Shown: piece by piece, positions 321 to 45,969 of the stretch | How positions within the stretch are numbered: position 1 is the stretch's first letter | Layout: each line of letters opens with the position of its first letter | Origin: Nageia nagi | Taxonomy: Eukaryota > Plantae > Pinophyta | Direction: 5' to 3' | DNA: 64,000 nucleotides | NCBI GenBank assembly: GCA_050084985.1 | Contig: JBITNC010000002.1 | Span: forward strand, 5,208,001 to 5,272,000 | Made by a program: the position numbers and the translations under genes | The notes under the pieces: generated by a model | Told to the model about the DNA's origin: nothing | What the model saw: only the letters and a program-made list of their open reading frames with translations | The model's database searches: none

Positions 321-2099
321 TAACAATTAAGTAGTGAAAGATCCAAGAGAAAAAAGTAGGTGAAGAATAAATAAGTTTATATGGCTTTTCCAAGACTAGT
401 AGGTGGATTGGCATCCCTCAAAACTTGAATAAAAAAGTCATAATTGTAGAAGTAACTAGCTATTGCAACCAAGGGCAATGGATACGCCAGAGAACATTAT
501 ATGGTTTATATATTTTTTTTCAATTGTAAATTATAAATATTTGAAAATAAGATCTAAAAATTAGATTTTGATTTGTTCTCTAATATCATTTGGAATAAGG
601 GGTTAAGAATTTAAAAATATTTTGCTGTTTAGTTTTTTTTTTTTTTTTGCTTTTTACATTTATTGTTAAAGTATTAACATATCGATTTCGAAAAGAATAA
701 TAAAAAATGTAAATCTTAAAGCATAGAAAAGTTTGAAAAGATTAGTTAATACCATGATAAGTGTCTAAATCAATACACATGCATCAATGCTCTTGATATT
801 TACCTCTCTTGAGAGAAAACCAATAAAGTAGAGTCATCACAAAAGTTCTAGGTTTATTTTATATGTTTTGAATTTTTGAATTTATTTTTGTTTCATAATA
901 TGTATTTTTGAGGTTAAAGACTTTCTCTCCATTAAAGGAAGTTTTTATAGAAGTATCTATTTTATATATAAGAGGGTAAGAAGTGATGTATAAAAATTGA
1001 TAGTATTTTTAGAAAATGACATTATTTGATTTTAAATTTTCATGAAGAAATATTATAGCTATCTTAGTTGTTGGTTGAGTTGGTTATGTGTTGAACTTGT
1101 TGTGACCTATAGACATACATGCTATGTAATGGCCTACTACAATTGTTCGATACATTAATCTACAATTATTCAATGCATTAATATACTTTAACTTTTTCTT
1201 TTTACAAAAAAATTGCAATGTAAATAATATTTAATAAGAATATGAGTAAATTATAAATTTACATTATATATTTAAAATTTATATTTAAAAGTTTATGTTT
1301 ATAATCTATATTTAATTTTTTATAATTTATAATTCAAATTTAAATTTTATAATTTATATTTAAAATTTCTAATTTTTAATTAAAATTTATAATTAATATT
1401 TAGAATTTATATTTAAGATTTAAAATTTATAAATAGAAATTATAATTTATAATTAAAATTTACAAGAAGATTAAGTCAAGAAGGTAACATTTATTATTAT
1501 TATTATTAAGGTATGTTGGTACAAGGTTGAAATGTTTGTCTTAAATGTTTAAATTTTTTTAGGTTTTTTAAACATTTTTTACAATAAATTTTTTTCTTAA
1601 CTATCACATAAAAAAATACATATATAATAAAAAATAATGATAGTTAAGAAAAAAATTTATTGTAAAAATTAAATTTAAAAATATATGTATTTTTTTATTA
1701 TATATGTATTTTTTTCTTAACTATCATATATATATAATAAAAATAAATTTTTTATATTATTGATATTTATATATATATAAATTTAAAAATATTTATGTAT
1801 AATTAAAATTATTTATATTTAATCCACAAATGACATAATTTTATTATATTATTAATATATTTTGATGGACATAAAAAATTTCGAAGTATATTGATGGGTA
1901 TTAGAATAATGTTGTAAATAATTTGTGGACGTGCAGAGGAAAACGTCAAATTTCAACCCTGATTTAGTCAATGAGAATAACACATGGTTGGTAAAGATTG
2001 CACCAAATTCTTCCCAATCATAAATTTTAAACATGCATGCAATGTTGGGTGTCAAGGAATCACACGACCAGTGCGAGGAAGGCGAAACAAGTAGAGAAA

Positions 2100-2260
2100 G
2101 ATAATCGACCAGTTTATGGAGGTAGAGAAAGATCTCGTGCTGTGTAAGTTCATGCACTGAGTGGCCAAGATGGCTTTTCGATGTGTGGAATTTGATAGAG
2201 ACACGAGGCCCGCCATGGTGGAGGTAGCACAGGAATTAGACTTCATATGGACCAGTTATA
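2100..2260 (+). pseudogene. WAK-like receptor kinase C-terminal fragment (copy A)
   Basis: Translates as DQFMEVEKDLVLCKFMH*VAKMAFRCVEFDRDTRPAMVEVAQELDFI (kinase subdomain XI); duplicate of ~4700-4860. Confidence 0.7.
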
Positions 2261-3104
2261 GTTGCAACATCTCAACCAAAAATGCCTCACGAGATAGAGA
2301 TAATGACAATGACCAAGCTCTTTGAATCCAACTGCAAAAATGTTTCAATCGTTTGGCCGCTACCGTGGAGCTGTAGCCTACCATCAATTTGCCAAATGAG
2401 CTTTGAAGTCTCAATGAGGATAGGCAGGTGGAAAGGATCGAGATGCATGATGTAAACGCATGAAAAGTAAACTTGCCATATAAAAATCTAAGGTCCATAG
2501 GATTTCAATCCTCTGCTGGGTATCATGGAGGTTGATAGAACCATGGATTGAGAGATGGAGCTCCTCAGTCTCAATGTGGGGATGACTTACGATGTAAATA
2601 TGGAGATTACATGTCATGAGTCAATAGCTCTTACTTTTCATTATTAATATATATTACTAGCTCGTCTTTCTAGTTGAAATTTATTATTGTATTCCTCATC
2701 TTAACATTCTCAATATGAGTGGCAAAGTCACCACCTCATTTGATTGTATTCTCAAGGATGTTAATTGACATAATCCATGTAGATTCACCTATGGCAGGAG
2801 ATATAGCCAAGGAAAGCTTGGGGACTATGTTTCAAGTCGCTTAGAGATTTATAGCATGGGGAGGAGAAGGTGGATGTTGTTGTGAGATTTGGAGTAATAA
2901 AAAGATTTGGACCTCTTAAGAGAAACATAACTTATAATGCATGCCATATTCCCTAATAATCAATGAGGGTTTAGAGGTGCACCATCTCCATATCAATTTT
3001 ATTTGTATAAATATAAATATGTGATAACACATAAAAGATAACTTTCACTTCGTCATCAATGGTGATAAGAACCATATTAGACATCCATTAAGGATAATCT
3101 ATAG

Positions 3105-3246
3105 GATTTAAGGGTAGGGTTTAATGGTTAAAGGTTAGGGTAACAAGTTAAGGGTAGGGTTAAGGTTAAGGTAAGGGTTTTGGGTTGGGGGTTAGGTATC
3201 AAAGGTTTGGGTTAGAGGTTAGGGTTAGGGTTTAAGGGTTGGGGTT
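3105..3246 (+). repeat. Degenerate telomere-like (TTAGGG/TTAAGGG-type) tract at the duplication junction
   Basis: G-rich 6-8 bp units. Shares unique interruptions (gtttaatggtta, gtaacaagttaaggg, ttaggtatc) with ~13660-13812. Confidence 0.85.
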
Positions 3247-4169
3247 AAATTTGCATGAAGAAATATTATAGTTATCTTAGTTGTTGGTTGAGTTGGTTAT
3301 GTGTTGACCTTGTTGTGACCTATAGACATACATGCTATGTAATGACCTACTATAATTGTTCGATACATTAATATACTTTAACTTTTTCTTTTTACGGAAA
3401 AAATTACGATGTAAATTATATTTAATAAGAATATGAGTAAATTATAAATTTACATTCTATATTTAAAATTTATAATTCAAATTTAAATTTTATAATTTAT
3501 ATTTAAAATTTCTAATTTTTAATTAAAATTTTTAATTAAATTTAAAATTAATATTTAAGATTTAAAATTTATAAATAGAAATTATAATTTATAATTAAAA
3601 TTTACAAGAAGATTAAGTTAAGAAGGTAACATTTATTATTATTATTATTATTATTAAGGTATGTTGATACAAGGATGAAATGTTTGTCTTAAATGTTTAA
3701 ATTTTTTAGGTCTTTTAAATATTTTTTACAATATTTTTTTTCTTAATTATCACATAAGAAAAATACATATATAATAAAAAATAATGAATTTATTGATGTT
3801 TAAAATATTTATTTATAATATTGATATTTATACATATTTTAAATTTAAAAATATTTATGTATAATTAAAAATATTTATATTTAATCCACACATGAAATAA
3901 TTTTATCATATTATTAATATATTTTGATGGACATAAAAAAATTCAAAGTATATTAATGGGTATTAGAATATTGTTATAAATAATTTGTGGACATGCAAAG
4001 GAAAATGTCAAATTTCAACCTGATTTGGTTAAGGAGAATAACACATGGTAGGTAAAGATTGCACCAAATTCTTACCAATCATAAATTCTAAACATGCATG
4101 CAATGTTGAGTGTCAAGGAATCACATGACCAACGTGAGGAAGGTGAAACAAGTGGAAAAATAGGTGCTT

Positions 4170-4575
4170 TCATCTAGCTAAATGTTGTGGTTGCAAATTC
4201 CTTGGTAGACATGTATGCAAACTGTAGAAATCTAAAGAATGCATGCAAATTATTTCACAAGATGCATGATTCATACATGGTTTCATGGAACTTAATGATC
4301 GTAGGATATGAACTAAATGGATTTTTTGAAAGAGTGCTAGAGATATTTTCATGGAATGCAATGATCGTAGGATATGCATAAAATGGGATTTCTAAAAAGG
4401 CCCTACAGACTATCTAAAATTTGCCAACATTCTTCCAATACGTGCCAGCGTAGGATCTCTAGAAGAAGGTATGGACATCCATCAAAGAGTAGTTGGAGAT
4501 GGTTTTTCGTCAAATGTTGTGGTGTGGGTGCCAGATAGACATGTATGCAAAATGTTGAAGAATACACAAGGCTTA
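4170..4575 (+). pseudogene. PLS-class pentatricopeptide repeat (PPR) gene fragment
   Basis: VVANSLVDMYANCRNLKNACKLFHKMH...VSWNLMIVGY...WNAMIVGYA*NG and MDIHQRVVGDGFSSNVVV, with stops and frameshifts. Confidence 0.85.
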
Positions 4576-4619
4576 GGAATTATGAAAAATATTATTGGTA
4601 GAAGTGTTCTGCAAATTTT

Positions 4620-4860
4620 GCCCTTATGGTGGAGATGTAATCCACATCAACATGGTGGTGTTAACCACCAACAAGTTTCGAAGTAGTTATAGTTTGGAGG
4701 AGATATTCGACCAATTTATGGAGGTAGAGAAAGATCTCATGCTATGTAAGTTTGTGCATCGAGTGGCTAAGATGGCTTTTCGATGTGTAGAATTTGATAG
4801 ATACACTAGGCCCACCATGGTGGAGGTAGCACAGGAATTAGACTTCATATGGATCAGTTA
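4620..4860 (+). pseudogene. WAK-like (WAKL14/15-type) kinase C-terminal fragment
   Basis: INMVVLTTNKFRSSYSLEEIFDQFMEVEKD...VHRVAKMAFRCVEFDRYTRPTMVEVAQELDFI resembles the WAKL pattern INLAALA...LDEIIDPFLE...IHKVAELAFRCL...RPSMxEVAxEL. Confidence 0.75.
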
Positions 4861-7534
4861 TAGTCGCAACATCTCAACCAAAAATTCCTCCCTTCATTTG
4901 ATTGATATTATCTTCTTATCACATGTTGCATGAGATAATGACAATGACCAAGATCTTTGAATCCAAGTGCAAAAATGTTTCAATCGTTTATCTGCTACCG
5001 TGGAGTTGTAGCCTACCATCAATTTGCCAAATGAGCTTTGAAGTCTCAATGAGGATACACTTTATAACAGGCACATGGAAAGGATTGAGATGCATGATGT
5101 AAATGCATGAAAAGTAAACTTGCCATATAAAAGTCTAAGGTCCATAGAATTTCAATCCTTTGCTTAGTATCATGGAGGTTGATAAAACCATGGATTGACA
5201 GATGGAGCTCCTCAGTCTCAATGTGGGGATGACTTATGATGTAAATATGGAGATTAAATGTCATGAGTCAATAGCTCTTACTTTTGATTTTTAATATATA
5301 TTACTAGCTCATCTTTCTAGTTCAAATTTATTATTGTATTCCTCATCTTAACATTCTCAATATGAGTGGCAAAGTCACCACCTCATTTGATTGTATTCTC
5401 AAGGATGTTAATTGACATAATCCATGTAGATTCACCTATGGCAAGAGATATAGCTAAGGAAAAGCTTGGGGACTATGTTTCAAATCGCTTAGAGATTTTT
5501 AGCATGGGGAGGAGAAGGTGGATGTTGTTGTGAGATTTAGAGTAATAAAAAGACTTTGACCTCTTAAGAGAAACATAACTCATAATGCATGACATATTCC
5601 CTAATAATCAATGAGGGTTTAGAGGTGCACCATTCCATACCAACTTTATTTGCATAAATATAAATATGTGATAACATATAAAAGATAACTTGCACTTCGT
5701 CATCAATAGCGATAGGAACCAATTAGATATCCATTAAGGATAATCTATAGGTTGAATAAAATATATGCCTATCAGCTTTTGGAGTTCTTCCTTGACCATT
5801 AAGGCTATTGTAGGATGCATTTTTTTCAATTTTAGTTTGTAAGGCTTAGCATTGGGATCAAGGGTAAGATTATGTACAATGAGCTTAGGATCAAGGTCAG
5901 GCATGCAATCTTTATAAGACCAAGAAAAATACCCTTTTTTCATGATTTTAGAATGTTTATGAGGAGTATCTTTTCTTCATTAGTCTAAGTTATGCCTATT
6001 AGCATGATTTGCAAGTTATTTGGTTATGTAGAGAGATCAACTTCTAAAGTATCTTTGATCAGCATGTGGCACTTATCCTCTAATTGGTGAGGAACATGAA
6101 TGTAATATCTCTCATTTATGTTTAATGGGGATGAAGACTTATCATCATCTAATCCTTCCACTTGATAGATGGGAAAATATGTAGAATGAAACGAAAGAGG
6201 GGTGAATTTATGTACATGGTTCAAAACCTAAGGCATAAGAAATAAATCATAAGAAGTTATATTCAGTAATATTTTACTAAAGTCAATGGTAGTTGGCTTT
6301 AGAGGAAAAGTACAAGGATAGTATTCTTCTAAACGAAGAGGAGAAAATAAATCAGTGTACGCCATGTGTGAATAAGGAGGTGCACCTACAAAAATAAAAG
6401 AAATGTAGAAATTAAAATGCTTAACTCATTAAAATACTTATGTGTAAAAAGCATGAAATTATTTACAAGAACATCTATTATCTAATATATAATAATGTAT
6501 AAAAGAACTAGTACAAGGGAAAAGAAGGCAAAGAGAAAGAAGAATGAGGTGGAAAAGGAGAGGAAAGAGATGGTGTAATAGAAGAAGGTTGAGATGAGGA
6601 AGTAGAAGCAACGAAATGAGACAAAGAAGAAGATAAAGAAGGTGTAATAGAAGAATATTGAGATGATGGTAGAGAAGGAATGGTATGAAAAAGAAATCAA
6701 GAAGGATATGATCGATTAACCAAAGGAGGAATGATGGGATGCAATTTGAAAAGAACTACATGTGTGAGTGGGGTGAGGTACTATGGAATGTGTATAATAA
6801 GCTCGAAGTCATTATGGCAAAGAGAAACTATTCAACTTGATTCATCCTTTGAAGCATCAAAGTTTATGGTAGGAGACGCGAAACTACCCTTGACATTATC
6901 ATTAGAGGAGTCAATAAACTCAATGTGAATCATGTAGATATCCAAGGTCTCATCAAGAGAAATGAGGGAAGAATACTTGCTCGAATTAATAAACAAGTCA
7001 TCAATAAAATCACCATTACTCCAAGGAGTTGTTTATTTTCCTCTAAGGCATTTATGTTAAAATCCTCTAAGAGTTATTCAATAGTGATAGAGGATTCTTC
7101 TTGATGGTATCCTAGGCCTGCTTTATATATGGGAAAGTGATATGGAACTTGTAAGATGCATCGAGGTCCTTTCTCATCACACCATAATCCATGAACTTGT
7201 AATTGATATCATTGAAGGCAATGTAAAACATAGTCTAGATTTGATAAGTAACCCATGTTCCTTCAATAGACCCTTTAGGTAGAGTTGTGTGGGGTAAAGT
7301 AATGGGTTGGTTAGCTCCAACATAAATAAATGATGTGGTAAAGTCGGATGGACCCAAATGGCATATACTACCATTGATTTGTCTAGTTGTAGGAAGAAAA
7401 CTAAATTTTTGAGCAATTTGTATAGTAGGGATGGGGAAATATACATTGTGAACAACATACTCTCCCATGCTTGAACTCAATATCTATACAAACATGTGCT
7501 ATAAGTCGATATGGATTGATGTGAATGAGGTTGT

Positions 7535-8067
7535 TGTTGGAATATATAATGCATAATTGTAAGGTTATTGTAAATTCATCAATACTTTAAGGTATCTATA
7601 GATAACTTAAGTATTTAAGTGAATATGATAATGCAACTTGTCCTACACTCCTTCTCATAAGCATGCCCTTGGGTAAAAGGGTGAAGCATGCCATGCCTTT
7701 TACAATGGTTAAAAGGGTGATCCAAGGGAGAATTTTAGCCTATAAATATAAGGCCCTCTCCTTGATATTACACACCAAAAGTTGAAGCAAAGTTATTCTC
7801 TAGGATTAGTGTTAAGAGAGGAAGAAAGAGATCTTGTAACAGAGTTATCTATGTGAATGTGAAAGATCTAAGTTAGCAGATGTACTCCCATGGTTGAGGA
7901 ACCACGTTACATTGGTGTTAATTTGTGAGAATGTTTATGCTTTGAGTATTGATGTTTGAGAGAGCTTTCATATAATATTGGGCATATACGAATTAGGTCT
8001 TTTACTCTTAATTCAATCGATCATCTCTTAAGGGCTTGAAGATGCTTGTGTATATGATAAACAAACA
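7535..8067 (+). mobile_element. Probable solo LTR of the Copia family found at 45395-45969
   Basis: Begins TGTTGGAAT and matches the reverse complement of ~45720-45969 (e.g. aagtgaatatgataatg(c/t)aacttgtcctacactcc). TATA-like cctataaata is present. The right end is approximate and no TSD was confirmed. Confidence 0.75.
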
Positions 8068-11447: not shown

Positions 11448-13170
11448 TAAAGAAGGATTAATGGGTTCCTTGCAAAGGTGGGTTTGCAACCTATCCAAAA
11501 GCCTATGATCTATAGAGATAGACTGAGGAATCCTAGGTGGCGTAGCAAAATTAAGGGGTACCTATGGGGAAGAAGAATTTTTGGGCTAAGTTGAAAAGGG
11601 GATGGACTTGGAGGTGTATAGAAAGAGGTATATGATGGTAAAGGAAAGGGATATGGTGCAACTATCATATGAACTTGACTAGGTTATAGCAATGAAATTA
11701 GTGTTGAAAGCTAACTAAATGGTGGAGATTGGGGGTGGGGGGACATATTCTAATGAGGCTTGTGGTTATGGTAAAGATCATGATAAATCACATGTTTATG
11801 GTTAGGAAGTATACTAAGGCTGAGGAGTAGGTGAAAACTATTGCACTTACGTGGAAGGAGGTGGTTGTTGTCAAAGAAATAGGTGTTGTGCATAGCGAGG
11901 GAGATTAAGATGGAGAAGAAAATGATGTAGATGGATAACCCATTGATGAGGGAAATTTTACCAATAAAATTTTGGGAGGTAAAAGGTGCTTGGAAAAACT
12001 ATAAAAATGTATCATCGAAAGATGCAAATTCTATTGAAAATGTAGGATAAGGGGTAATCATAGAAGAAGGGTGTTGAAACTAAAAATTCAATAGAGAAGA
12101 TAACAAAATAGGGGGTGGCGTAAAGACTGTAGGTGAGAGATGAGACAATGTAATAAAATCATAAGATGGAAAAATGAAGTGGAAACCATGTAAGGAGTTT
12201 AGAAGTATTATGGAGGTATGGATGTGCTAAGAGTGAATGGATATTGAAATGTCTAAGGCGGAGGAGATGAGGAAGTGGTAGAAGAGAAAATAGCTTCTGT
12301 AAATGTAGGGGAAGATTAGCTTGATGAAAGATGTTAAGTAGTGGGAGAAATATAAATCATCTCCATAGAAAAAGATGAAGATATAGGATAAGAGCTAGGG
12401 TAATAGTGAATCTCAACTTGGTAAGAAGGACCTAATGTAGAAGTGGGTGAAAAGGATATGTGAGGTAAACTCTCCATATGTAGAGGTGAATGAAAAGGCA
12501 AGTGCTCTTTTGGGGTGACATATGTAACCAAAAAGGGGTGGTGAAGATTGTAGTATGCATCATATGTGTCTCCATGATTAGACTCATGATAGTAATCACC
12601 ATCTTGTAGGATACCCTCTCCACCTTGACAATAATGAGTGGTGGAAGGGTTTAGGTGTATGAAGAAAAGTTATAATACCTCATGCAAAAGAAGGTAGATG
12701 TAGAAGGATCACTACAAAATAAAATAGATTTTATGTTAGAGCGCACATCATAAACTAATATATTTTTTTTTACAAATTTTGATCCATAATTTGATGCCAT
12801 ATCTATTGTTAAACGACATGATAAAAATTATGTTAAAATTTGTATCAAATAATGCATCATCGTGTGTTAGATATGGAGACATTCGATGTCAAAATTAGAG
12901 TAAAAACTAGAGACACTTTATGTTAGTAGTGGAGGAACTTTGCATTTTAATTTGAGTAAAAAATAGAGACACTTTGCATATTAATTTGTAATGAAAATAG
13001 AGGCACTTGGATTGAGCATGTGCATCAACAATAGAGGTACTCTGAGGTGCATTTTGAGTAAACTATGCAGGCACTCTAAGTTAGATTTCACATCATACGA
13101 CATTAGTATTGGCATAAAAAGTTAGAATTTTGTAAAAACATATTTGAATTGATCTTGTTGGACTAGTGCT

Positions 13171-13982
13171 ATTAGGGGTTTGGGTTAGGATTTAAGGGTT
13201 ATAACATTTCTATATGCATCACATGTAATGTACATACCTTGATGCCAGCCTTTGATGGTGTTAAGGTGCACATTGATGTAGCTTTAGAAAGAATAAAAAA
13301 TACAAAAAATATTATAATACCTTTTTTAATAATTAAAAAAAAATATAATATAAATATTATAATTTAAAAAATATAAATATGTAAAATTGGGTGTTTGGGA
13401 TTAAATGTTGGGGTTAAGGTTTAATGGTTAGGGGTTAGTGTTTAAGGGTTAGGGTTAAGGTAAGGGGTTAAAGGTTATGGTTAGAGGTTAAGATTCAAGG
13501 GTTAGGGTAAGGGGTTTGGGTTAATGTAAGGGTTTTAGGTTAGATGTTAAGGTTTAAGGGGGTTTAAATGTTAAGGTTAAGGGTAAGGATTGAAGGGTTA
13601 GGATTTAGTGGATAGGGTTTAAGGTTAGAGGTTAGGGTCAGTGGATAAGATTCAAGGGTTAGGATTTAAGGGTTAGGGTTTAAGGGTAGGGTTTAATGGT
13701 TAAGGGTTAGAGTAACAAGTTAAGGGTTAGGGTTAAGATTAAGGTAAGGGTTTTGGTTTAGGTATCTAGGGTTTGGGTTAGATGTTAGGGTTTGGGTTTA
13801 AGGGTTGGGGTGAAGGTAAGAGTTAGGGTTTAGGGGTTAGGATTTGAGGGTTGGGGATTACTGTTAGGGTTAAGGTAAGTGATTAGGGTAAGGGGTTAAG
13901 GGTCAAGGTTAGGATTTAGGGTTATGGTTATGATTTAGGGATTAGGGTAAGAGTTAGTTTTAATGATAACGATTAAGGTTAG
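13171..13982 (+). repeat. Left subterminal degenerate telomere-like array (G-rich on +)
   Basis: Short tract 13171-13200 and long tract ~13389-13982 of TTAGGG/TTTAGGG/TTAAGGG/TAAGG variants. Confidence 0.9.
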
Positions 13983-14754
13983 TGTACATGCACAAATATA
14001 TATATTTAGATATGGAATCATGTATAATGTATTATATGATTTAACAGTTAATGATAATCATAAGCTCATATATTTTTTAATATTATTACTACATGGGGGG
14101 ATTGATAATTGAGTTTGAAAGGAATTTTGTATTTTATTTTTAGTTCTTGGCATGGTAGTTAATGTCATTGGTCAAATGTTGATGGACATATAGTCTTCTA
14201 GAATTGATTTTCATTATATTTTGTTTTATTTTACTTGTAGTTCTTATATGAATGATTTTTTTTTTAATTTTAAAAATATTATAAATAATGAGTAATGATT
14301 TTTGGTTTTTTAAAATTTGATAATATTTGAATTAGTGGATTATATCTCTATATTGACCAAGCGAATTGATGTTTTCTCAAATGCGAAAGACATACCTTAT
14401 ATTCCTTAAAAGAGAATATATCTATCTTTAGATGATGACAAGTCTCCTTATATTCCTTAATCGAGGATAAATGTTTCATTAGATGAGGATGAGATGGAGA
14501 TGCCACCAAATCGACACATAAATTTCATTTAAGAAATTATATATGTAGAAATTTAAGATCATTTAAATTCTTACTTTGATGATATTATGTGAAATATTTA
14601 ACTTAATATTATGATTAATATTATAGGAAGAATCAATTTACCAAAAGAATGAAAATTGATTAAGATGATGATGATCATAAGGCAATTAGCATCAAAATTT
14701 AATTTGATTTTAGAAGTTTTATTAAATTAAATTGAAATAATTATATTAAATTAA

Positions 14755-15517
14755 AGTCAAATTCATCATATAAAGAGAGAACAAGATGAAGAGGGAAGAA
14801 CATGCAGAAGAACAAGATTTCATAGAGCAGTGTCACATATCATTGTAAATGAGGAACCATTTGATATACCATTAGAGATTGTTGGTAATAGTTCTTTTCC
14901 AAATCATCTACAACATTTATGTAACGATACATATGATCGTGAGGCATACGATGCATGGCCAATCGATAGACCTTTTCTAAAAGCTTTTGAATAATTAAAT
15001 CATTGTGGTGATTCATACATGATCAAACTTTAAGAATATTTGCATGGTGATGGCATGGGTTTATTTATATTGCCTTATGTACATGTTCATCATGATATCT
15101 AGTACCACCAACATTGATGTATTTTTGTGGATCAATTTACAAACAAGGTATTTGAAGATAATTATCATCATATATATACAATATGTCTAAATACAAACTT
15201 TATGGAAATGGTCATAGTGTAGCAGGAGATCAAATAAATTTTTTTTATATTGATGGTTGAAAAAAAATACATGGAAATATTTTAGAACACATAAACAACA
15301 CCAAAGGCACCACATACACACACACCCCCCTAATTGTGAATTTGTAGAATTTTAAAATGATCAAGAATATTGGATGTATAAAAAAATACGTAGTTATGTA
15401 GGTTTAGTTATTCTTAGAGATCTTTTACCTGGTTCTGAGTTATGGATCTACTACAATTACACAAAACATACTCTAAGATGTAAGGAATGTTTGGAGTCAG
15501 GATATCAAAATGCTTAA
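14755..15517 (+). pseudogene. SET-domain (lysine methyltransferase-like) gene inside the CACTA element, frameshifted; possible upstream exons at ~14330-14680
   Basis: Three-frame reconstruction. Frame 1: YMIKL*EYLHGDGMGLFILP (15016-15075). Frame 3: PTLMYFCGSIY...MSKYKLYGN...FFYIDG*KKIHGNILEHINNTKGT (15108-15311). Frame 2: PNCEFVEF*NDQEYWMYKKIRSYVGLVILRDLLPGSELWIYYNYTKHTLRCKEC...NA* (15329-15517). The SET motifs occur in canonical order. Confidence 0.8.
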
Positions 15518-15759
15518 TATTTGTTTGGATCTATGGATATATGGACATTGTTACTATTTGATGCTTAATATTTGTATGTATGTATGAAAAATAGATAATA
15601 TTACTATTTGATGTTCATATAGATATTGTTAACTATTTTAATATATGGATATCAATGTTTGTATGGATGTATGAAATATGGATGTTATTGATTTTATTTT
15701 TTTTCACTATTTTAATGGCTAATTTATATGTAACAACTAATTAATTAATTTTATAGGCA

Positions 15760-18700
15760 CACGAATATGCAAGAATGTCTTATACACAAGTCCAAAAAAA
15801 CATAAATAAGAAAAAAAAAGGGAGTGACTACACATGTATTAAGTGTTGATGCATATGAATAATTCTTTATAGACCCAAATCCAACAACTTATGTTCCTGG
15901 AGTCATGCATTCAGATACTAATAATAATGGAAGAGAGAATAATATTGCTCATCAAGATCAAAGTGCAATGAATGATTTATTTCATTCGGTCTATCCAAAT
16001 GCATATGATGATGTAGACATGAATCATACTTCTCATACACATGATGATGTAAGAGATGGTGATTAAGAAAATGATAGTATGTATAGTACTTCCAAAACTC
16101 TTTTATATGAAGAACCATGTTTATTCAAGTTATTGTAAACCCTAATTTTCATGAATTTAAAATCCAATTATGGATTATCAGATAAAAGTTTAACTGCTTT
16201 TTTGAAGTATGCAATATTTTTTGTTTCCCAATATTTTAATTTCAATGAATTTATATATTCATTTTTTTCATTTTTTAACAATAATTTTATTGCTTTATTT
16301 GGTATTTTCTAGGTTATCAAAAGCAAAGGTGTTTCCAAGAGATAATGTCATCCCTTCTTTGTGCAAAAATGCACACAAAATTTTTAACAATGTAGGAGTA
16401 CAGTGTCATTTATACCGTACCTATATTAATGATTACATATTGTATATAGAACCATATGAAAAATTAACTATATGTCCAAAGTGTGGTGCAAATATAAATC
16501 ATTCAAGAATGATAGGGAATAATATTCCTTATAAGAATGTTCGCAACTTTTCAATCATTCCTAGGTTGTTACAAATATTTTAGTGTAATTCAATTGCATA
16601 ATATATTGATTGGCATGTAAAAAATAGAAGTGAAGATGGTATTTTATGAATTCCTATCAATTCTAAAGCAATGAAACATATAGAAAATATGTGGCCCGAT
16701 AAATTCTAAGACAAACCTAAGAGTATCAAATTGGTTAGCAATTGATGGTATCAATCCATTTTCTATAGACACATATAATTATTCATTGTAGCTTATTGTT
16801 GTTTTAATTATAACATACATCCATGGATGTCTATAAAAAAAATATTTGATATTGATTGTCTTAGTTCCTAGATCATATCAGGTGAAAAATATAGATGTTT
16901 ACCTTGAACCATTGATTGATGAATTGATGTAATTATGGAATATAATTCAGAGTGTGATTGATATAAGTAGACCTATCCAATAGAGGTCATTCATATTATA
17001 TGACATCCTATGTTGGATTGTACACGACTATTTAGGACTTACTATTTGTTTAGGTATTTATATATAAAATCTTTATTACATTTGCATGTATAAAAAGCTA
17101 ATATATCATAAATATTTGATTTTATTTTACCACATGATAATGTATTCTCTAATAAAAATTATTGCAAGTATTCATACAAAAGGTTATCATGCTTTTCCAC
17201 AATGTGTAGAAAATCTCACATCAAGATATTCGAAATACTTGTAGAAGATGGAATACCTTGGCAATAAAAGATGGAATACGCTTTTTGAATTTTGAAATCA
17301 TAGTTTAATGGTGAGGTTGACTACAACCCCACTCCCAATTACACATCTCCTATAGATTGGTGGGTAAAGCTCGAGGAAAGTGTAGAAAAATATTGAGAAT
17401 GAGTAGTTGAGGAAGATACTGTTGCAAACTTAGATAATGTTATTGTTCATGAATATGACTTACCTGAAGGTGAAATTTAACAAAATATACAAGTATATTT
17501 ATTTATTTGAAAAAATACATGTTTGTAATATTTTAATTTCAATATTTTATCAATTAAATGATTAATTTTATGCATGTTTTCAAGCATGAAGACTATCAAT
17601 ATGGTATAAACATACATAGTGGGAGGAATTATTAATGGCACATTTATTAAATCCTATGCACATTGTAAAAAATGTTGCATCTTTTTTGTATCAATATATA
17701 ACAAGCAAAGATTCAGATAATCCTATTATGAAAAATGATTTAAAAGATACCAATACAAAGCATTCCTTATGGATAACTCATAATTCAAATGGATCAATAA
17801 ATGTAACTGATCCCTCCACATGGATTATGACCAAAGAACAAGTGACCATGCTACATAATGTTTTTCGAACCACTAAAATACCAAGTGGATATGGATCATC
17901 TTTAAGAAGAGAATTCACAATTGATGGTAAGATGACATGATTAAAGTATTATGATTATCACAACTTCTTAAAGGTATTATCATATTACATGTTTATAGAA
18001 ATATTTAAATTTATATTAATATACATTTTATTCAAAATATAGTGATTAATATATGTTGTGAAAAACTTTTGATGGTATTATATTTAGAATATTTTTCCAT
18101 TTGCAATCCATGCATGTTTTAGTTTACCTTCTAATATCTAGAAGACATGTAATTGATCGACTATCAATGTTTATAAGGCATCATGTAACATTTATATACT
18201 AGTACTATTCTATGAAGAAAATAACATGTGTTTATTGTTGTGTTCAAATTTTAGCTACATTTTGACATGTAACGATATTATATTTTCATAAACAAGTGAT
18301 TAACTTCAAAGGAGATACATGTGCATAAAATACATAGATGGCATAGAGAAAATACTAAAATTATATGTAAATCTGAAAATGAAATGTCTAATATTTTTAT
18401 GGACATACAAGTGTACTTATTGATCCATCTAGTAGATGATATTGAAATAGTAGGTGTTATTAGTGGTTGAGATATATTTTTTATGGAGATATTTTTGAAA
18501 GTACTAAAAGCATTTATTAGACAAAATTCATGATCAAAAGGATCTATAGGTGAGGGATACATTGTACATGAATATAAATTTTATGCAAGTCAATATGTTT
18601 CTCAAATCCATAATTTTTCCTCAAGGATGTGCAATGCAGACAACTTAGACAATTAGAAGGGGAGGTTTTAGAAATAAATGAGATAGTATATTCTCTTGTA

Positions 18701-19655: not shown

Positions 19656-19886
19656 AACTATAGAAATATGTTTTGATGTTATATTATGATATATTGAATA
19701 TATCTAACCATCAATATATTTTCATTTTGAAGTTAAATGAGTTACTTGAATTTAATATATTTTTATGTACCATTATGACACACCTACTACTTTTTGTGAT
19801 TATAAAAGTTTTTTAAAGATTTATTTAACTTTTAAAATATATTTGATTAATACATTTAATGTATTTGAAATTAATATATTTAAATT

Positions 19887-20790
19887 TAAATCCTAAACCT
19901 CTAAAATCATAAACCTTAACAACCTAAACCCTAAACCCTAAAACCTTAAAACCATAAACCCTAAACCATAAAACTCTAAATCCAAAATCTTAATCCCAAA
20001 ATCACTAAAACCTTAAAACCCTAAACCTTAAACCCTTAAAACCCTACAACATAAACCCTTAAAACCATAAAGCTTAAAACCATAAATCGACCTATATCCT
20101 TAAACCCAAAATTCTAATCCCTAGACCTTTAAAACCCTACCTAAAACCTAAACCCTAAAACCCTACACCTAAAATCCTAATACCTAAACCCTAAAATAAT
20201 CATCAACATCCACCTAGTACAATGAATGCATTGGTTATTACATGTGAGAGAATGATTAACCTTTCCTTATCATCTGTAATAGAATAAAAATATGAACTTA
20301 TAATAAAAGCAATTACATCACTATTTGGGGTAGAGCATGCTTTGCCAAATTGGGGTACAATACATTGCCCCATGCCATGATCAGGTTATCTAGAAGAATT
20401 CCCATAAGGATAGAACACTATATTTTCTCTCTAGAATAATGCCCATAATGTTAACATTTTCTTTGATGATCAAACCACAGTCCATTCATTGAGCCTCTTC
20501 CCTTTTCATGGAAATAAAAATGTTATAGCAAAAAATACATCCAAATTAGGCAATTCCAATGATGGTATACATTATATTTAATATAAAAAGGCCCCATGGA
20601 AGGTATTTCAAGTGCTATCTTGGTTTCAAGTTCTAAATTTTTTATGGGTTTATGCATTACAACCCTTAAACCTCTAAATTACCCTACAACCCTAAACCCT
20701 TAAAATCCTAAAATCCTAAACCATATACCTTTAAAAACCTAAAATCCTAAACCATTAAAAACCTAAAATGCTAACCCTTAAAAATCTTAA
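19887..20790 (-). repeat. Right subterminal degenerate telomere-like arrays (C-rich on +)
   Basis: Long tract ~19887-20195 and short tract ~20660-20790 of AAACCCT/AAACCTT/AAACCAT variants, including several perfect AAACCCTA telo-boxes. Confidence 0.9.
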
Positions 20791-21179
20791 ACTATTATAG
20801 TTTTTTAAAAACACTCATAAATTTTTACGCCAGCATCAGAACAAACCAAACTAGTTTAGTGGTGGGATATATCGTCATACTTAGCATAATTTGTAACATC
20901 ATATTTTAATTAAAGTACATCAAACATGATATCAAACAAATCAAATATTTTGTCAAACATGACATCAATATAACGTTGTTTAACCGTCATGGGTCATCAA
21001 ACTCAATGTCACTAAATACAAAAAAAAATCATTGATACACAAGTAACATTGTTTGACATTATTACATTTAGAATATTGTTTGGATATCCTTAATGCACAC
21101 CCTGATGCTAAATGGGTTTTGTGTTGTAGTGATCCATGTATCTAGTCAAGAAGAACTTATCATTTTTCTTATACTCCAT

Positions 21180-22932
21180 ACCATAACTATATGTACCATA
21201 TATGTATCTCAACATATATTTAGTCGCTATCCAATGTGCTTCATTTGGTTCATGTGTAAATATAGAAATATAGTTAACAATATAAAAATATCTAGATCGA
21301 TATAAGTAAGGTAAATTGATCCTCCAATTGATTGATGGTAGAGATTTTCATTTACTAGTGGAAAATTATCATGACCTGAGATCCATGTAGTCTATGAAAT
21401 CGCATCTACATTATGTATCTATTTAAATTTTTTTTTAGCCTTTTATATATTTTCACACATTGTATACACATCTATTACGAAATTTACATCCTTAACAAAT
21501 GGCATAATATGCTTCTAAAAATATTGATATTTGTAGAATCTATTGCAAACTTATTGAGGAGGTTGGAAAGGAAAATTGATTTAGTTGGAATACTATTATT
21601 GTCATTTTATCATATGAGATAGTTTCAATGTTTGTCAAGGGAAGTTGTGTCTTTGGTAACCAAGAATTATTATATTCCATGCGCAGATGTTAAATTGTTT
21701 AACCATCCAATTAAAATATTAATGGATGACTGTTGAATTTATGTGATTGACATGCATGTAGATAAGTCGATATTAGAAAAAATCTCATGGAAGATTGTTT
21801 AAAACCCACGAGAACTTGATAAACAATTAGGTTAATAACTTCATAGATCATTTAAAATATGCAAGAACTTGATAAATCATCAGGTTAAGAACTTTACTGA
21901 TCATTCAAAACTCAGGTTTAGGTCATCCTTAAATATTATGAATTATCTAGTTTACTATAACATAGTAACATATTACTCTATCTTGTTATCATGCATAGAT
22001 GAAAGACACCTACAAATTCCTCAATTGTATGAGTGAATAAGACTTCTCATGAAATATAATAATTTATGGTATATTGTATATCCCAAATATGATATAATAG
22101 GATATAGTTTTTCCTTTAGGTGTCCTCATTTCAAATGTGTGGAATTATCTTGTTTACTTGATAGATCATCACTAATTCAGTAATCGGTTCAAATATTTTG
22201 ACCAAACAGATCATTACAGTCTCTTGCCACTAAAGTGATCCTTGGCTCAATTTTCATCGTGCATAACCATGAATCATCAGGACTTTTTTGTAATATGGAA
22301 GAATGTGTAATGTGTACTACTATTTGTTGGATGTTGCTAATAGTTATACCAGATATTGGTGGCTATTTAGTTGATGATATAATTTTTATTTATAATTTCA
22401 AGGTTAAAGAGGAAAAATCTTATTTTGAAGTTAAGGTTATTTAAATTAGATTTCTTAAAATTTCTTTATATGGGCCAACTATGTGATCTTAAATAATTAA
22501 AAATTAGTTCAAATTTGGGCTATTAAAGTGTAAGGCAGATCCCTACAAATTCAAAAAAACTAAAGTTGGGAGTTTGAAATATTCACCTATTTAGGATGGA
22601 TCGCCTCTATTATTTCTCTTGCTTATCTATAGATTTTGAGTTATCAATTTAATTCTTTACTAATGAGATCATTCCAATGGTAGAGACGAAGTCCAAGATC
22701 CTCTTATTGGATAAGTTCAATAGGAAGGTTTTAACATATTTGTTGTATTATTTCAATGAAATTTGAAATAAATCTAAGAATAAACCCCATTTTGTAGTTA
22801 ATTCTATATATAATAACAATTTTTCACTCCAATTTGAAAAAAAATGCTATATAATATTCTTGTTTACTTTTAATTATATTACATTATTTGAATGTAATTA
22901 TGACTTCTACAATCATTATAATTTAGTTATTT
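21180..22932 (+). repeat. Long inverted repeat, left arm (~1.75 kb)
   Basis: Colinear reverse complement of 34500-36201, from ccataactatatgtaccata to tataatttagttattt, with many substitutions and a ~50-bp indel near 22590-22640. Confidence 0.9.
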
Positions 22933-24613: not shown

Positions 24614-24691
24614 CAACCCTTCCCCTGTTTCCTTCCACGCATTATAGAAAGTTGTAATTCGAGCGCTGAACATTCTCTGTTCACGTCCGTG

Positions 24692-27124
24692 ATGGAGGGT
24701 GTCTTCCTGTCACGTCTAATTTTGGCACTCATTGTATTCAGCAACCTCATGAGAAGGAACGGAGCGGTGGAAGGCACAGATACTCTTTCTTTGGGTGCCT
24801 CTCTGAGGGGTAATCAGACTATTGTTTCACAAAATGGAACGTTTGAGTTGGGATTTTTTAACCTCAATGGAACCAATAACTGGTATCTCGGCATCTGGTA
24901 TGCTAAAAGCCCCAAGCCGGCCTACGTTTGGATGGCCAACAGAGAGAATCCCCTGAAAAACATGCCCGGTTTACTGAATTTATCGACAGAAGGTCAGCTT
25001 GGCTTGTTTGATGCAGAGGAAGCAACCCTGTGGTCTTCCAACGGGAAAAAGCCGGCATCTGCCGCTGTTTTACTGGATTCCGGTAATTTTATCATGCTGG
25101 GCGCTGAGAATAAATCTGAGTCTGTCTGGGAAAGCTTTGAGCATCCTGTGGACACATGGTTGCCCGGGATGAAAATTGGTGGAGAATCCAAGTTGATATC
25201 TTGGCGGAACTCCGTGGATCCGGCTCCCGGAAAATTCTCTTTCGAGATAGACCAATCGGGTGCATTACAGTTCGTTCTCCGTTGGAACGATTCCGTTCAG
25301 TACTGGGAGAGTGGCCTTTGGGACGGTAAAATCTTTGCTAACATTCCAGAGATGGCAAGCACTAGATATGTTTACAAAATGGAGAACACCACCTCCGGCG
25401 GTTATCTCAGTTATATTCCTACTGCCCCAGATGCCCTTCCTCGTTTCGTCATGGACAAGTCCGGATCACTTCTGCTGTATTCGCTGATTGATGGCAACCG
25501 ATGGGATATGTTCTGGTCTCGGCCCACGGATCAATGCGAGGTTTATGGTCTCTGCGGGGTTTATGGAACTTGCAATTCCAATAATATCGAATTCTGCAGC
25601 TGTTTGCAGGGATTCAAGCCCAGAGACGAGCAAGCCTGGGGTTCGCAAGAGTGGTGGACAAGTGGCTGTGTTCGTCGGAACCCAATCAACTGTGATGCCA
25701 AAATCAATAGTCCTGACCAGTTGATCGACCTGAATGTGTGGCTGCCGGATAATAACAACAACAACAACCACGATGATTCATACGCCGCGACATGGAATGA
25801 TTGTGAGAAATCATGCCTCGATAACTGCTCTTGCACTGCTTTCAAGTATCTGTCTAATGTCTGCCAAATCTGGAGAGGGGACTTACTAAACATACGCAAC
25901 TCTCGGCCGAAGAACGATTCAGCAGTCTTCCTTCGGGTGGCCGCATCTGAATTTGGAACCTCTTCTTCCTCCAAAGGTAGAAGAAGCAAAATAGCGTTGA
26001 TGGTTGGAGTTGTTGTTGGTTGCGCCATTTGTATGGTCATTTTGGTATGTTTAATCTGGCGGAGGCGGTGGATGAGATCGATAAAAGGGTACGCTGATTA
26101 TTTGGCTCTCAGGTTCCCCGTGGCTTCTTGTTGTAAGGGTCTAGAAGCTAACGAAGTTGATGCTACAACATCTATTCGGATGTTCACATACAAGGAGTTG
26201 CAGATTTCAACAAGAAGCTTCACACATAAATTGGGAAGCGGCGCATTCGGTTCGGTGTTCAGAGGAACTCTACCAGACGGTACACTTGTCGCCGTTAAAA
26301 AATTGCAAGGCGCAGGACAAGTAGACAAACAGTTCCGTGCTGAAATCAACACCGTGGGAAATATAAATCATGTGAATCTGATCAGGCTTCGGGGATTTTG
26401 CGCTGAGAAATCTCAAAGGTTACTGGTCTACGATTACATGCCCAATGGCTCCCTAAATACATTTTTATTTAAGAACAAGTCTAAAAACGCAGAGGAGTGG
26501 AAAACCCGGTTTGAGATAGCATTAGGGGTTGCACGGGGATTGGCTTATCTTCACGAGGAATGCAAAGAACGCATCATTCACTGCGATGTTAAACCCGAAA
26601 ACATTCTCCTGGATGGCAACTTCTGCCCAAAGTTGGCGGATTTCGGGCTAGCAAAGCTTGTGGGTAGAGATTTCAGCCGGGTGTTAACTACCACAAGAGG
26701 AACGAGAGGCTACTTGGCTCCAGAGTGGATCTCTGGCCTTCCCATCACTCCAAAAGTCGATGTGTACAGTTTTGGTATGACACTGCTGGAAATTATATCA
26801 GGGCGGAGGAACCTGGATTTGGATGCCCAAGAATCCAGTAAGTTTTATTTTCCCATGTGGGCGGCAACTCAAATCCAAAACGAAGAAATAATGAGGCTTG
26901 CTGACGGTAGGATAGCAAAGAGTGCAGAGAATGAAGAGGTGAGAAGAGCTGCTGTGGTTAGCATGCTATGTATTCAAGATGATGAGACAGTGAGGCCAAG
27001 CATGGGTCAAGTCCTCCTCATGTTGGAAGGGAAGACGGAACTCCATACACTGCAAATTGAGAAGTCTCTATTGACGCTCCTAAACCGACAAGGAAGAAAC
27101 CAGGATAGTGATAGCAGTTTTTGA
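24692..27124 (+). CDS. G-type lectin S-receptor-like Ser/Thr kinase (SD-2 class, non-RD), 810 aa, intronless
   Basis: Signal peptide; bulb lectin (GTFELGFF, WYLGIWY, VWMANRE, LLDSGNF, WESFEHPVDTWLPG); S-locus/EGF region (CEVYGLCGVYGTC); PAN (CEKSCLDNCSCTAF); TM helix; kinase with GSGAFGSV, VAVKKL, HCDVKPEN, DFG, GTRGYLAPEW. First ATG is at 24692; the ORF track starts at the preceding GTG. Confidence 0.97.
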   Translation: MEGVFLSRLILALIVFSNLMRRNGAVEGTDTLSLGASLRGNQTIVSQNGTFELGFFNLNGTNNWYLGIWYAKSPKPAYVWMANRENPLKNMPGLLNLSTEGQLGLFDAEEATLWSSNGKKPASAAVLLDSGNFIMLGAENKSESVWESFEHPVDTWLPGMKIGGESKLISWRNSVDPAPGKFSFEIDQSGALQFVLRWNDSVQYWESGLWDGKIFANIPEMASTRYVYKMENTTSGGYLSYIPTAPDALPRFVMDKSGSLLLYSLIDGNRWDMFWSRPTDQCEVYGLCGVYGTCNSNNIEFCSCLQGFKPRDEQAWGSQEWWTSGCVRRNPINCDAKINSPDQLIDLNVWLPDNNNNNNHDDSYAATWNDCEKSCLDNCSCTAFKYLSNVCQIWRGDLLNIRNSRPKNDSAVFLRVAASEFGTSSSSKGRRSKIALMVGVVVGCAICMVILVCLIWRRRWMRSIKGYADYLALRFPVASCCKGLEANEVDATTSIRMFTYKELQISTRSFTHKLGSGAFGSVFRGTLPDGTLVAVKKLQGAGQVDKQFRAEINTVGNINHVNLIRLRGFCAEKSQRLLVYDYMPNGSLNTFLFKNKSKNAEEWKTRFEIALGVARGLAYLHEECKERIIHCDVKPENILLDGNFCPKLADFGLAKLVGRDFSRVLTTTRGTRGYLAPEWISGLPITPKVDVYSFGMTLLEIISGRRNLDLDAQESSKFYFPMWAATQIQNEEIMRLADGRIAKSAENEEVRRAAVVSMLCIQDDETVRPSMGQVLLMLEGKTELHTLQIEKSLLTLLNRQGRNQDSDSSF

Positions 27125-29849: not shown

Positions 29850-32800
29850 TCGAGGTTAAACCAGGGACCATCCAAAAAATAACAAAAATGGCTATCAAGA
29901 CATTAACCAAATCATCGAACTACTTTTAAAAACCTCCAATACACTAACCAAAATAACTTATACAACTTACGAAAATACAATATACTAACAAAGGAACTAC
30001 TCCTAACATCATCACATAACACCAACACTAAGTCATATAAGCAAAAATATCAACCCTTCTTATGCTCCTCGACCTCCATCTCACTCACGATTTTACCATA
30101 GGCTTCTAACATATGCATTGTTGGTCAAACTAATCCAAAGATGTTTCTACTACTGATGGTCTAAAGGTGGCCTTGCTCGATCATAATTGGGCCTTCCTTA
30201 CCTTTTACCATGAACTCCTCATGCTCTGATGCCTCTAACAAATCCTCCTCATCTATGCCTTGCTTCCCCTCTTGCACCAGCTCCTCTGGATCCTTGACCA
30301 ATCCCTCCTTTTTATCTAGAGGACCCTAAGTTACCATGAATTTCTCCATAGCCCTCTTTACATGTTAATCTCCTCTAGAATCACCTTTGATTTTGACTCC
30401 TCTATATAGATTGAACTTTTTTTTACTTTACAAGGCAGGTAATGCCTTTCCCTACCTTCAACTCTTGCAAGATACCAATCCTCATCTTCAAACTTGATCC
30501 TTCTCTTTTTCTCCATAGAAGAAGGATGCTTTTTATCTAAGGCTACTTGGACCAGAGGTGCCTCACTTGTAGTCCATTCAAAGCTCTTTGATATCCCTAT
30601 TTTCCTTATGATAAACTTAAACATCATCAAAATCAAACCCTGATGACACATATCATTACCATGGCTCTTTTGGAATTCCTTGATCTCTTTATCCAACTCT
30701 TTATAAAGAAAGGTCAGGATGTTCATCTTTGTGTCTTTCAAGTGATTCAAGAAACTAAAATAGAAACTTCATACCTAGAGGTCTATGGTATCTAGGGTGA
30801 TGAAATGCATAATGACCAAGGTGACTTTCCACCATGGATTTGGTAATGAAATTTGTGCTATCCCACCATGCTTCTCACGTTGTAATTTTGGTCCACCTTT
30901 ATAAAACTTAGCGATAAAATCCTTAGTAATTTGTAATCCATTCCAAAAGGGAGAGCCTGCTTTCAAATTATTCTCTTCGAGAAAAGATGAATTGGAGATG
31001 TATTTTTTAATTGATGATCTTTACCCAGGGCATGTCTTCTTTAATCGTTATTTTCTAGCCCAATTTTTCCAAAAGAGCCATGTTCATCTTCTTAAAGTTC
31101 TTAATGCCTAGGTCACCTTGTACAAAGGGGAGGTAGACCTTCTTTCATGCCACCAAGGCCATTCTTTTCTTCTCCTTAATACCTTTCCATAGAAAATATC
31201 TTTAAATTTTAATAATTTTTTCTTGGACCCCCATCGGTATTTTAAAGATAGACATAATAAATCAGTAAGCTCTGGAGGGCTAACTTGATCAATTGGAGCT
31301 TCCCTCCTAGCCTTAACAAAGCTCCCTTCCACCCCACCAACTTTCAAGAAAAAGCATTTAATGATCGAATCCCATAAGGCCTCATTCATGCATCCTTTAA
31401 AGAGTGGTATGCCTAAATAAGTAATAGGAATATCCCTAAGAAACATTCAAATATTCTAGAAACTCTTTGTTGTAACAATAACCCAATGTTGTAAAAGAAT
31501 AATTTACTCTTCTCAAAATTAATCTTTTGGCTTGCAGCTACTTCATAAATATCTTAAGAGTTTTTTAATTACCTTAGCTTGAGGAATGGAGGATTGCGTT
31601 GAAATTAGAGTGTCATCCACAAACTATTGATATGGAATTGGAGGTAACTTATCTGAAGGTTTAATGACATCAATCCTCCCATGTCGCGTAGCTTCCATAA
31701 TGCTTCTTCCTAAAGCTTCCATCAAAATGATTAAGAGGAAGGGGTATAATGGATCACCTTGGTGGAGTACCCTTTTTCTAGGAAAATAACCAGCTGCATC
31801 CCCATTGATAAGCACTGAGAAGGATACTGAAGAAATGTAAGCTTCAATTAAGGAAATCCAATCTTTTCTAAACCCAAAATAATATAAAAACTTAAGAAAA
31901 AAGTACCAATCAACCCTATCATATGCCTTACTAACATCCATCTTAAGTAGCATTCTTTCCTTTCTTGACTTTGCCACTGAATGGGAGACTTCATGGATAG
32001 CAATATTACCATATAGAATTTGTTGCTCTTGAATAAAAGCACCTTAATTAGGACTAATAATGATTGGAAGTATAGTTTTAAGATGATTTGCTAAAACTTT
32101 TGACATAATTTTGTAAAGAAAATCGTAGATACTAATGGGTCAAAACTTACTAAAAGAATTGGCTCTAGCCACCTTTTGAATTAGAGCAATGAAGGTGAAA
32201 TTTACATCTTTAGGCATTTGTTTAGTTGATTGGAAGGTTTGCATCACCTCCATAATATATTTACCTAAGATATCCCAAAACGATTGGAAGAAATAACCTA
32301 GGAAACCATCCGAACCAAGCACTTTAGAGCCCCCCATATCACACATTATTGCATGAATCTCCTTCTCAAACTTACTGCTAAGAAAGTTATTAAGCTAGTA
32401 CATCATCAAATTAGGGATTTTATTGAGAAGTTTTTCAACTGCTCATTGTTGGGAGGTAGACTATTTTCCTAATATATCAAGGAAGAAGGATACCCCCTCC
32501 TCTTTAATTCTCTTTAGGTCCTTAGTGGTGAAGCCTTTTGCACATTATATTTCCTTTATGGAGCTATGACTCTTATGCCTTAAGGTTTAAACATTAAAGA
32601 ACTTAGTGTTCCTATCCCATTCCTTTAGCCATTTGATTCTAGATTTTCGCTTCCACATAATCTCTTCCTGTTTAAGATTATTATGCAATTACCCCCAAAA
32701 CATCCCTTTCCTCAGCTCGAACCTCCTCCGTATAGCCATGAACCTGAATATGATGCACCAAGGTATTTATTTAATTTTGAACATTCACATTCCTTGCGAG

Positions 32801-45394: not shown

Positions 45395-45969
45395 TGTTGA
45401 TGTTATTATTTTTTCATGATGAACATCGATGATGTTGCTCCAAACTACTAAAGATCATCAAGGAAGATTTTGAAGGAACTAACACTAACAAGATAATTCC
45501 TAAACAACCAAGATCTCTTAAAAGATCATAATTACATCTAACTATCACACGAAGCAATCTCACAAAGATAACACAAGATGTAAGTGGTTCCTCCAATTAG
45601 GAGTACATCCACTAACTAGATCTTTACTTCAATCACAAATACAACTCTTTTACAATCCTCCTAATCTCATCTCCTAAACTTTTATCTTATAGCATAACTT
45701 AACTCCACAATTGGTGTGTGATCACAAAGAGGGAGCCTTTTATTTATAGGCCAAAATCTCTCTTTGAATCACCCTTTTATCCAATGTACAAAAGCATGAC
45801 ATGCACATCTTTTACCCAAGGGGCATGCTCAAAACATGGAGTGTAGGACAAGTTACATTATCATATTCACTTAAAAACTTAAGGTATCAAATGATACCCT
45901 TAAGTATTAGTGAACTTACATAGAAGATTTAATACAAACCTTTACAATAATGCATTATGCATTCCAACA
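45395..45969 (-). repeat. 3' LTR of the Copia element (575 bp)
   Basis: Minus strand TGTTGG...TCAACA, immediately preceded by the polypurine tract TTAAGGGGGAG (45970-45980). Confidence 0.85.

Follow-up and report, generated by a model that had tools for sequence, protein, structure and literature searches.

The window analysed here, a 64-kb stretch of the Nageia nagi genome, is AT-rich (31.7% G+C) and contains between 12710 and 21131 what is probably an old, inactive copy, about 8.4 kb long, of a plant CACTA/EnSpm DNA transposon. Its left terminus lies at 12710–12739 on the plus strand (CACTACAAAATAAAA..., with CACTACAA at 12710) and its right terminus at 21102–21131 on the minus strand (...TTGTGTTGTAGTG, with CACTACAA at 21131 on that strand); the two ends are alike at 20 of 30 positions, the first eight of which are perfect. 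The triplets flanking these ends are GAT and ATC and no direct 3-bp target site duplication was seen there, possibly because of decay in an old element or because the ends are slightly misplaced. Inward-facing subterminal arrays of degenerate, telomere-like TTTAGGG-type units are found at both sides, with GGGTTTA-type units on the left (13171–13945, plus strand; repeat families D1, D6 and D8) and CCCTAAA-type units on the right (19880–20790, minus strand; repeat families D2 and D3), and a stretch of unrelated sequence about 455 bp long (20205–20659) splits the right array in two; left and right arrays match at 67–71% in reverse complement. The heavily broken remains of a TnpD-type CACTA transposase occupy 15863–18653 on the plus strand, where Transposase_21 (PF02992) was matched at 16837–16929 (E 1.7e-4, profile positions 70–100 of 213) and DUF4218 (PF13960) at 18300–18467 (E 3e-5) and again at 18534–18653 (E 0.033). 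These three matches are collinear on the plus strand, and each stays below its gathering score because the transposase gene is shattered. Three features that characterise CACTA elements are present together, namely Transposase_21 with DUF4218, terminal inverted repeats that start with CACTA, and inverted subterminal arrays. Inside the CACTACAA ends, on the transposase strand and immediately upstream of the Transposase_21 and DUF4218 remains, lies a decayed SET-like gene.

Several other features of the window were recorded. The region 1000–5700 is tandemly duplicated (period about 2.1–2.6 kb, identity 81–96%), and a 148-bp telomere-like array inside it, at 3102–3248, is 88% identical to 13674–13814 in the left arm of the CACTA element; this is possibly a remnant of a further copy of that CACTA family. 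Apart from this array, the SET-like stretch was not found a second time within the 64-kb window. An inverted duplication of about 1.7 kb (21179–22932 and 34500–36202, 84–91% complementary) starts 48 bp past the right end of the CACTA element and brackets about 11.5 kb containing a receptor-kinase gene and an RVT_1 fragment (31624–31974, minus strand); it may be either a long-TIR element or a segmental inversion. The receptor-kinase gene, which marks the host as a land plant, is an intact, intronless 811-aa ORF at 24689–27124 on the plus strand, a G-type lectin S-receptor-like kinase with B_lectin, S_locus_glycop, PAN_2 and Pkinase domains (Pkinase E 2e-48). A weak inverted repeat pair (7569–7785 and 45704–45920, 77–81% over 88–115 nt) lies 38 kb apart.

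The SET-like gene, of about 248 codons, was delimited at 14770–15517 on the plus strand by three-frame translation (all forward frames over 14700–15560) together with tblastn of its relatives. The ORF list misses it, as the initial annotation had pointed out, and offers only a 54-aa GTG ORF in the region. Downstream of an N-terminal region at 14770–15033, the gene reads through EYLHGDGMGLFILPYVHVHHDI in frame 1 (15034–15099), then through ..PPTLMYFCGSIYKQGI (15096–15152), ..MSKYKLYGNGHSVAGDQINFFYIDG (15162–15257, ..MSKYKLYG..FFYIDG) and KKIHGNILEHINNTKGTTYTHTP.. (15261–15344, beginning KKIHGNILEHINNTKGT) in frame 0, and finally through PNCEFVEF (15329–15352) and ..SYVGLVILRDLLPGSELWIYYNYTKHTLRCKEC.. 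(15356–15514, containing VGLVILRDLLPGSELWIYYNY and then RCKEC) in frame 2, all on the plus strand. The first frameshift is located between 15073 and 15104, and the second lies inside the (CA)n/C6 tract ACACACACACCCCCC at about 15310–15335. The peptide strings described beforehand were reproduced exactly, with the frames and both frameshifts where they had been placed, and the copy is indeed dead: its ATG is lost (ATA at 14770) and it is interrupted by six internal stops (14992, 15031, 15153, 15159, 15258 and 15353) as well as the two frameshifts, ahead of the terminal TAA at 15515–15517. The stops reported as ‘a few’ are therefore real but more numerous than the wording implied. Of the limits first proposed, 14755–15517, the end holds, whereas the start is moved to 14770 by homology to the relative P0004. 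A small intron at 15148–15219, which would remove two of the stops, was also considered and not adopted, since SET motifs II and III would then, as judged by eye, lie too close together.

Relatives of this gene exist in public sequence data. With the 79-aa open piece 14755–14991 alone as query, a 108-aa ORF, P0004, was found on a 1.4-kb public (Logan) contig (E 3.5e-23); in the reverse comparison by tblastn it aligns with 14770–15072 of the window at 64% over 101 aa (E 5e-39). P0004 begins MKREQDEEGR, its Met facing the window ATA (Ile) at 14770, and stays in one frame as far as ...YMIKPLEYLHGANMDLFIL, where it has entered the first SET-like motif, degenerate in this relative (GANMDLF); window stops 14992 and 15031 are Gln and Leu in P0004. 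Among 1.8 billion representative proteins, the 53-aa C-terminal piece of the window gene (the C piece) retrieved the 44-aa P0001, from a separate Logan contig (E 5e-8), which in tblastn aligns with 15374–15502 at 60% identity (E 2e-14), shares an invariant RDLL.G..LW..YNY with the window and ends within a few residues of the window copy's stop. The other matches from that search, P0002 and P0003, are repeat proteins and were set aside as spurious. Further homologue searches with the C piece and with the alignment A1 returned nothing besides P0001, and no relatives came from scanning metagenome contigs with either A1 or P0004, so that two relatives were found in all, both fragmentary. No RNA run among the public sequencing runs contains the stretch, and three DNA runs hold small shares of it.

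Since P0004 is open in one frame from its ATG across two of the window stops, 14770–15517 is read as one gene; on these alignments it is a unit of about 248 codons with its own start and stop, of which two or more other copies exist, both known ones well diverged. The existence of diverged copies also argues against a one-off Pack-CACTA capture. The earlier view of an element-borne gene, as opposed to a recent capture, gains from this recurrence in P0004 and P0001, and no detectable similarity to any particular host SET class emerged. The N-terminal and SET-like parts have diverged to about the same extent (64% and 60% amino acid identity); this and the large number of breaks are what neutral decay of every copy examined would produce.

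The first part of the gene, about 85 aa, carries no domain recognisable by Pfam or NCBIfam, is open in P0004, and has a low recognition in the ESM Atlas (1076). For the C-terminal 160 or so residues, the comparison is with the published SET motifs, which are I GxG, II YxG, III RFINHxCxPN and IV ELxFDY (PMC3585878). The window has GDGMG, FCG, EHINNT..PN and ELWIYY, in the published order and with plausible spacing, just as the initial annotation had read them. Under the same motif definition, motif I stands in the context GDGMGLF (15046–15066), motif II is represented by FCG with Phe in place of Tyr (15123–15131), motif III is spread over GNILEHINNT, the (CA)n/C6 frameshift tract and PNC (15273–15337), and motif IV falls within RDLLPGSELWIYYNY (15416–15460; compare ELxFDY), all on the plus strand. 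Measured against RFINHxCxPN, motif III keeps I-N and P-N, has Asn for His and Lys for Cys, and is interrupted by the slippage tract (EHINNTKG..PN); motif IV keeps the E, the L and the last Y. MLL1 requires the His of motif III to bind AdoMet (H3907A), and Set1 and Set7/9 conserve it (PMC3585878); the window copy has neither this His nor the Tyr of motif II. The replaced His had been likened to that of PR/SET domains; the Asn is there, but motifs II and III are covered only by the dead window copy, so neither substitution can be attributed to the family and no PR/SET label is given. The cysteines of RCKEC are likewise not conserved, being replaced in the IRKEH of P0001, and there is thus no conserved post-SET motif.

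A minimal ordered set of the four motifs, relaxed just enough to admit the candidate, occurs once in the window, at this gene, while 300 simulated windows of 64 kb contained no instance of it; analytically, 0.0016 occurrences are expected per window by chance, or about 25 per Gb, and the minimal set alone is therefore not decisive genome-wide. The extended contexts G.G.GLF, GN....INN[ST] and RD...G.EL...Y, which were defined post hoc, are expected less than 1e-9 times per Gb. In the ESM Atlas the C piece obtained a score of 0.95, a value which comes from this one 53-aa piece and is reached by shuffled sequences about once in 100; 26 of its 30 nearest clusters carry PF00856, with 171 of 256 shared features and a recognition of 2522. 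This placement draws on the same motif as the initial reading, and the family it names is the family predicted beforehand.

The match to the SET profile (PF00856) that the initial reading led one to expect did not appear: with Pfam, the six stop-free pieces, which are short queries of 22–53 aa, gave no SET match at E up to 10, NCBIfam found nothing on the same pieces, and Pfam gave no SET match for P0001 or P0004. Against the PDB, the eight best matches of the C piece all fall in the C-terminus of the ASH1L SET domain (top match residues 174–211, E 0.39), and all seven matches of the two-sequence profile A1 fall there too, at the matching position; the E-values of these ASH1L matches, 0.39–0.45, are at chance level. 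PDB searches with the 32-, 28- and 22-aa pieces found nothing, and P0001 alone gave no SET match and only a chance match to CNF1. A SET fold has a pseudoknot built from motifs III and IV. AF2 modelled P0004 with a pLDDT of 41 and the C piece as a beta hairpin with a pLDDT of 61, and Foldseek returned nothing useful for the models of the pieces, the C piece being without a match. The best reading of the C-terminal part is a divergent SET-like domain, and we consider it quite likely to be correct; a SET identity is probable, being supported yet below the profile threshold, and no profile or fold establishes membership of the family.

Taken together, we put at about 70% the reading of the whole locus as a dead CACTA copy with a SET-like accessory gene upstream of its transposase. 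Were the gene a genuine CACTA accessory gene and its SET motifs convergent or fortuitous in an otherwise unknown small protein, the absence of a significant Pfam, NCBIfam or PDB SET match for any piece would be expected, as would deviations at the catalytic positions of motifs II and III, and the 25 or so chance occurrences of the minimal set per Gb would supply the rest. We regard this as rather unlikely, given that the extended motif contexts, their order and their spacing fit SET and that in the Atlas the C piece falls among SET clusters, with a score which about one shuffled sequence in a hundred attains and in a family predicted beforehand. That the gene is a host SET fragment, caught by one CACTA lineage in Pack-CACTA style and carried along unused as a decaying passenger, seems improbable. 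Every sequence seen is broken or fragmentary, both halves have diverged about equally, as they would under neutral drift, and P0004 no longer has the GxG motif, all of which a passenger would explain; it is harder to reconcile with a complete unit that begins with a start codon in P0004 and whose stops nearly coincide in two copies, with the absence of visible host-type introns across the 480-bp SET part, and with the lack of detectable similarity to a particular host SET class.

The N-terminal two-fifths raised a different prospect, that of an EEP-fold nuclease or phosphodiesterase (TDP2-like), and hence an endonuclease-like accessory protein. P0004 matches residues 31–125 of C. elegans TDP2, a 5'-tyrosyl-DNA phosphodiesterase, at E 0.0099 (19.6 bits), a three-row profile retains the match (E 0.015), and the total of about 248 aa resembles the length of an EEP domain. 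The match is, however, confined to one TDP2 orthologue and does not gain in score with the profile, the N piece of the window itself has no TDP2 match, and Pfam finds no Exo_endo_phos. In the alignment, Ser or Ile stands opposite the E of the TDP2 LQEV stretch, which we take to be the catalytic Glu of EEP enzymes, and the GDxN and SDH motifs expected downstream in these enzymes are absent by eye, the C piece looking like SET instead. As a single E of 0.01 among nine PDB searches is unremarkable, and neither the window copy nor Pfam reproduces the match, it was judged to be due to chance, and a TDP2-like protein is very hard to credit.

On the preferred reading, that of a SET-like accessory gene, the CACTA family would have carried a small gene directly ahead of its transposase and on the transposase strand. 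This ancestral gene, of about 248 codons and apparently without introns, would have encoded some 85 aa without a known domain followed by some 160 aa with the SET motif order (I GxG, II Y/FxG, III ..INN..PN, IV ELxxxY). In the window copy it would have been lost by neutral decay, through the change of ATG to ATA, six internal stops and two frameshifts, one of them at the CA/poly-C slippage tract. By analogy with the SET genes that HarbingerS, oomycete MuDR, Helitron and red-algal Plavaka elements carry, the product in the active ancestor may have been a lysine methyltransferase dependent on SAM, or else a SET-like module with weakened catalysis that served for binding, and may have acted on chromatin or on proteins of the element or host to the element's advantage. 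An anti-silencing role is speculation.

A bolder version would have active ancestors make a SET-type protein that wrote or blocked a lysine-methyl mark, on histones or other proteins, at their own chromatin, possibly spliced to the transposase. We hold this to be a long shot; if true, it would mean that a transposon of seed plants encoded an enzyme for counter-silencing or targeting, and a SETMAR-like architecture on a still-mobile element. A GT at 15480 (GTAAGG) and an AG at 15872 (TTCTTTATAG) make a 393-nt phase-1 intron formally possible, and this splice would link the SET frame, in phase, with an open 67-aa piece (15863–16063) before the transposase. Of 30 GT/AG pairs, 4 give an open junction, so that the 15480/15872 junction is no evidence by itself, and both the window copy and P0001 stop shortly after. 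A SET–transposase fusion by splicing is only a possibility.

Few transposons carry chromatin-enzyme-like genes of their own, and those that do are of interest for the arms race that pits mobile elements against epigenetic silencing. To our knowledge, VANC of VANDAL is the only well-studied land-plant case. A SET-like gene is uncommon for land-plant transposons and has precedents elsewhere; a CACTA family carrying one would add a seed-plant example to the oomycete, Helitron and red-algal cases, and the gene would be a concrete candidate for histone or protein methylation. To this the window contributes one more dead copy, known from sequence alone.

The initial annotation gave no precedent for SET cargo in plant CACTA elements. 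SET cargo as such has been published, in the passages of PMC12730594 that cite Kojima and Jurka (2014, Repbase Reports), as SET histone methyltransferase genes in HarbingerS and in oomycete MuDR, and also in Helitrons and in red-algal Plavaka elements, which belong to the EnSpm/CACTA superfamily (bioRxiv 10.1101/2025.02.11.637652); the novelty stands to the extent that no paper was found on a SET-like gene in a land-plant CACTA element. As those passages describe them, HarbingerS and oomycete MuDR resemble the present case in being cut-and-paste elements with a SET gene of their own, proposed to act on epigenetic marks, and differ in superfamily (PIF/Harbinger and Mutator) and in host. The closest parallel in superfamily is PAG2 (Plavaka accessory gene 2) of Plavaka, likewise a SET accessory gene beside a DDE transposase in an EnSpm-superfamily DNA transposon of which most copies are degenerate. 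Compared by description, PAG2 is a larger protein with a Pfam-detectable SET domain (PF00856) joined to an N6-adenine DNA methylase domain (PF01555) and forms part of a three-gene cassette in giant red-algal elements of 17–19 kb, whereas the Nageia nagi gene is a small stand-alone ORF whose SET-like half is sub-threshold, in a classical land-plant CACTA element of about 8.4 kb.

For the anti-silencing role suggested beforehand, a functional analogy is offered by VANC, the anti-silencing proteins that VANDAL (Mutator) elements encode in Arabidopsis (Hosaka et al. 2017, as cited in PMC12730594). VANC is alike in being an accessory protein of a plant DNA transposon and in acting on the epigenetic state of its own element; it has a demonstrated activity but does not belong to the SET proteins, whereas the window gene is so far a sequence only. 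Among host proteins, the SET2/ASH1 class (ASH1L; 4ypu, 6ago and 3ope) gave the best, non-significant match of the C piece, at motif IV; the window differs from ASH1L in its E of about 0.4, in having no AWS or post-SET zinc motif, and in a motif III without His. SETMAR, in which a SET gene is fused to a mariner transposase, belongs to its host as a domesticated gene that no longer moves. Its SET module lies directly upstream of the transposase on the same strand, as in the window, where the module instead sits inside a mobile-element copy and has its own stop codon in two copies.
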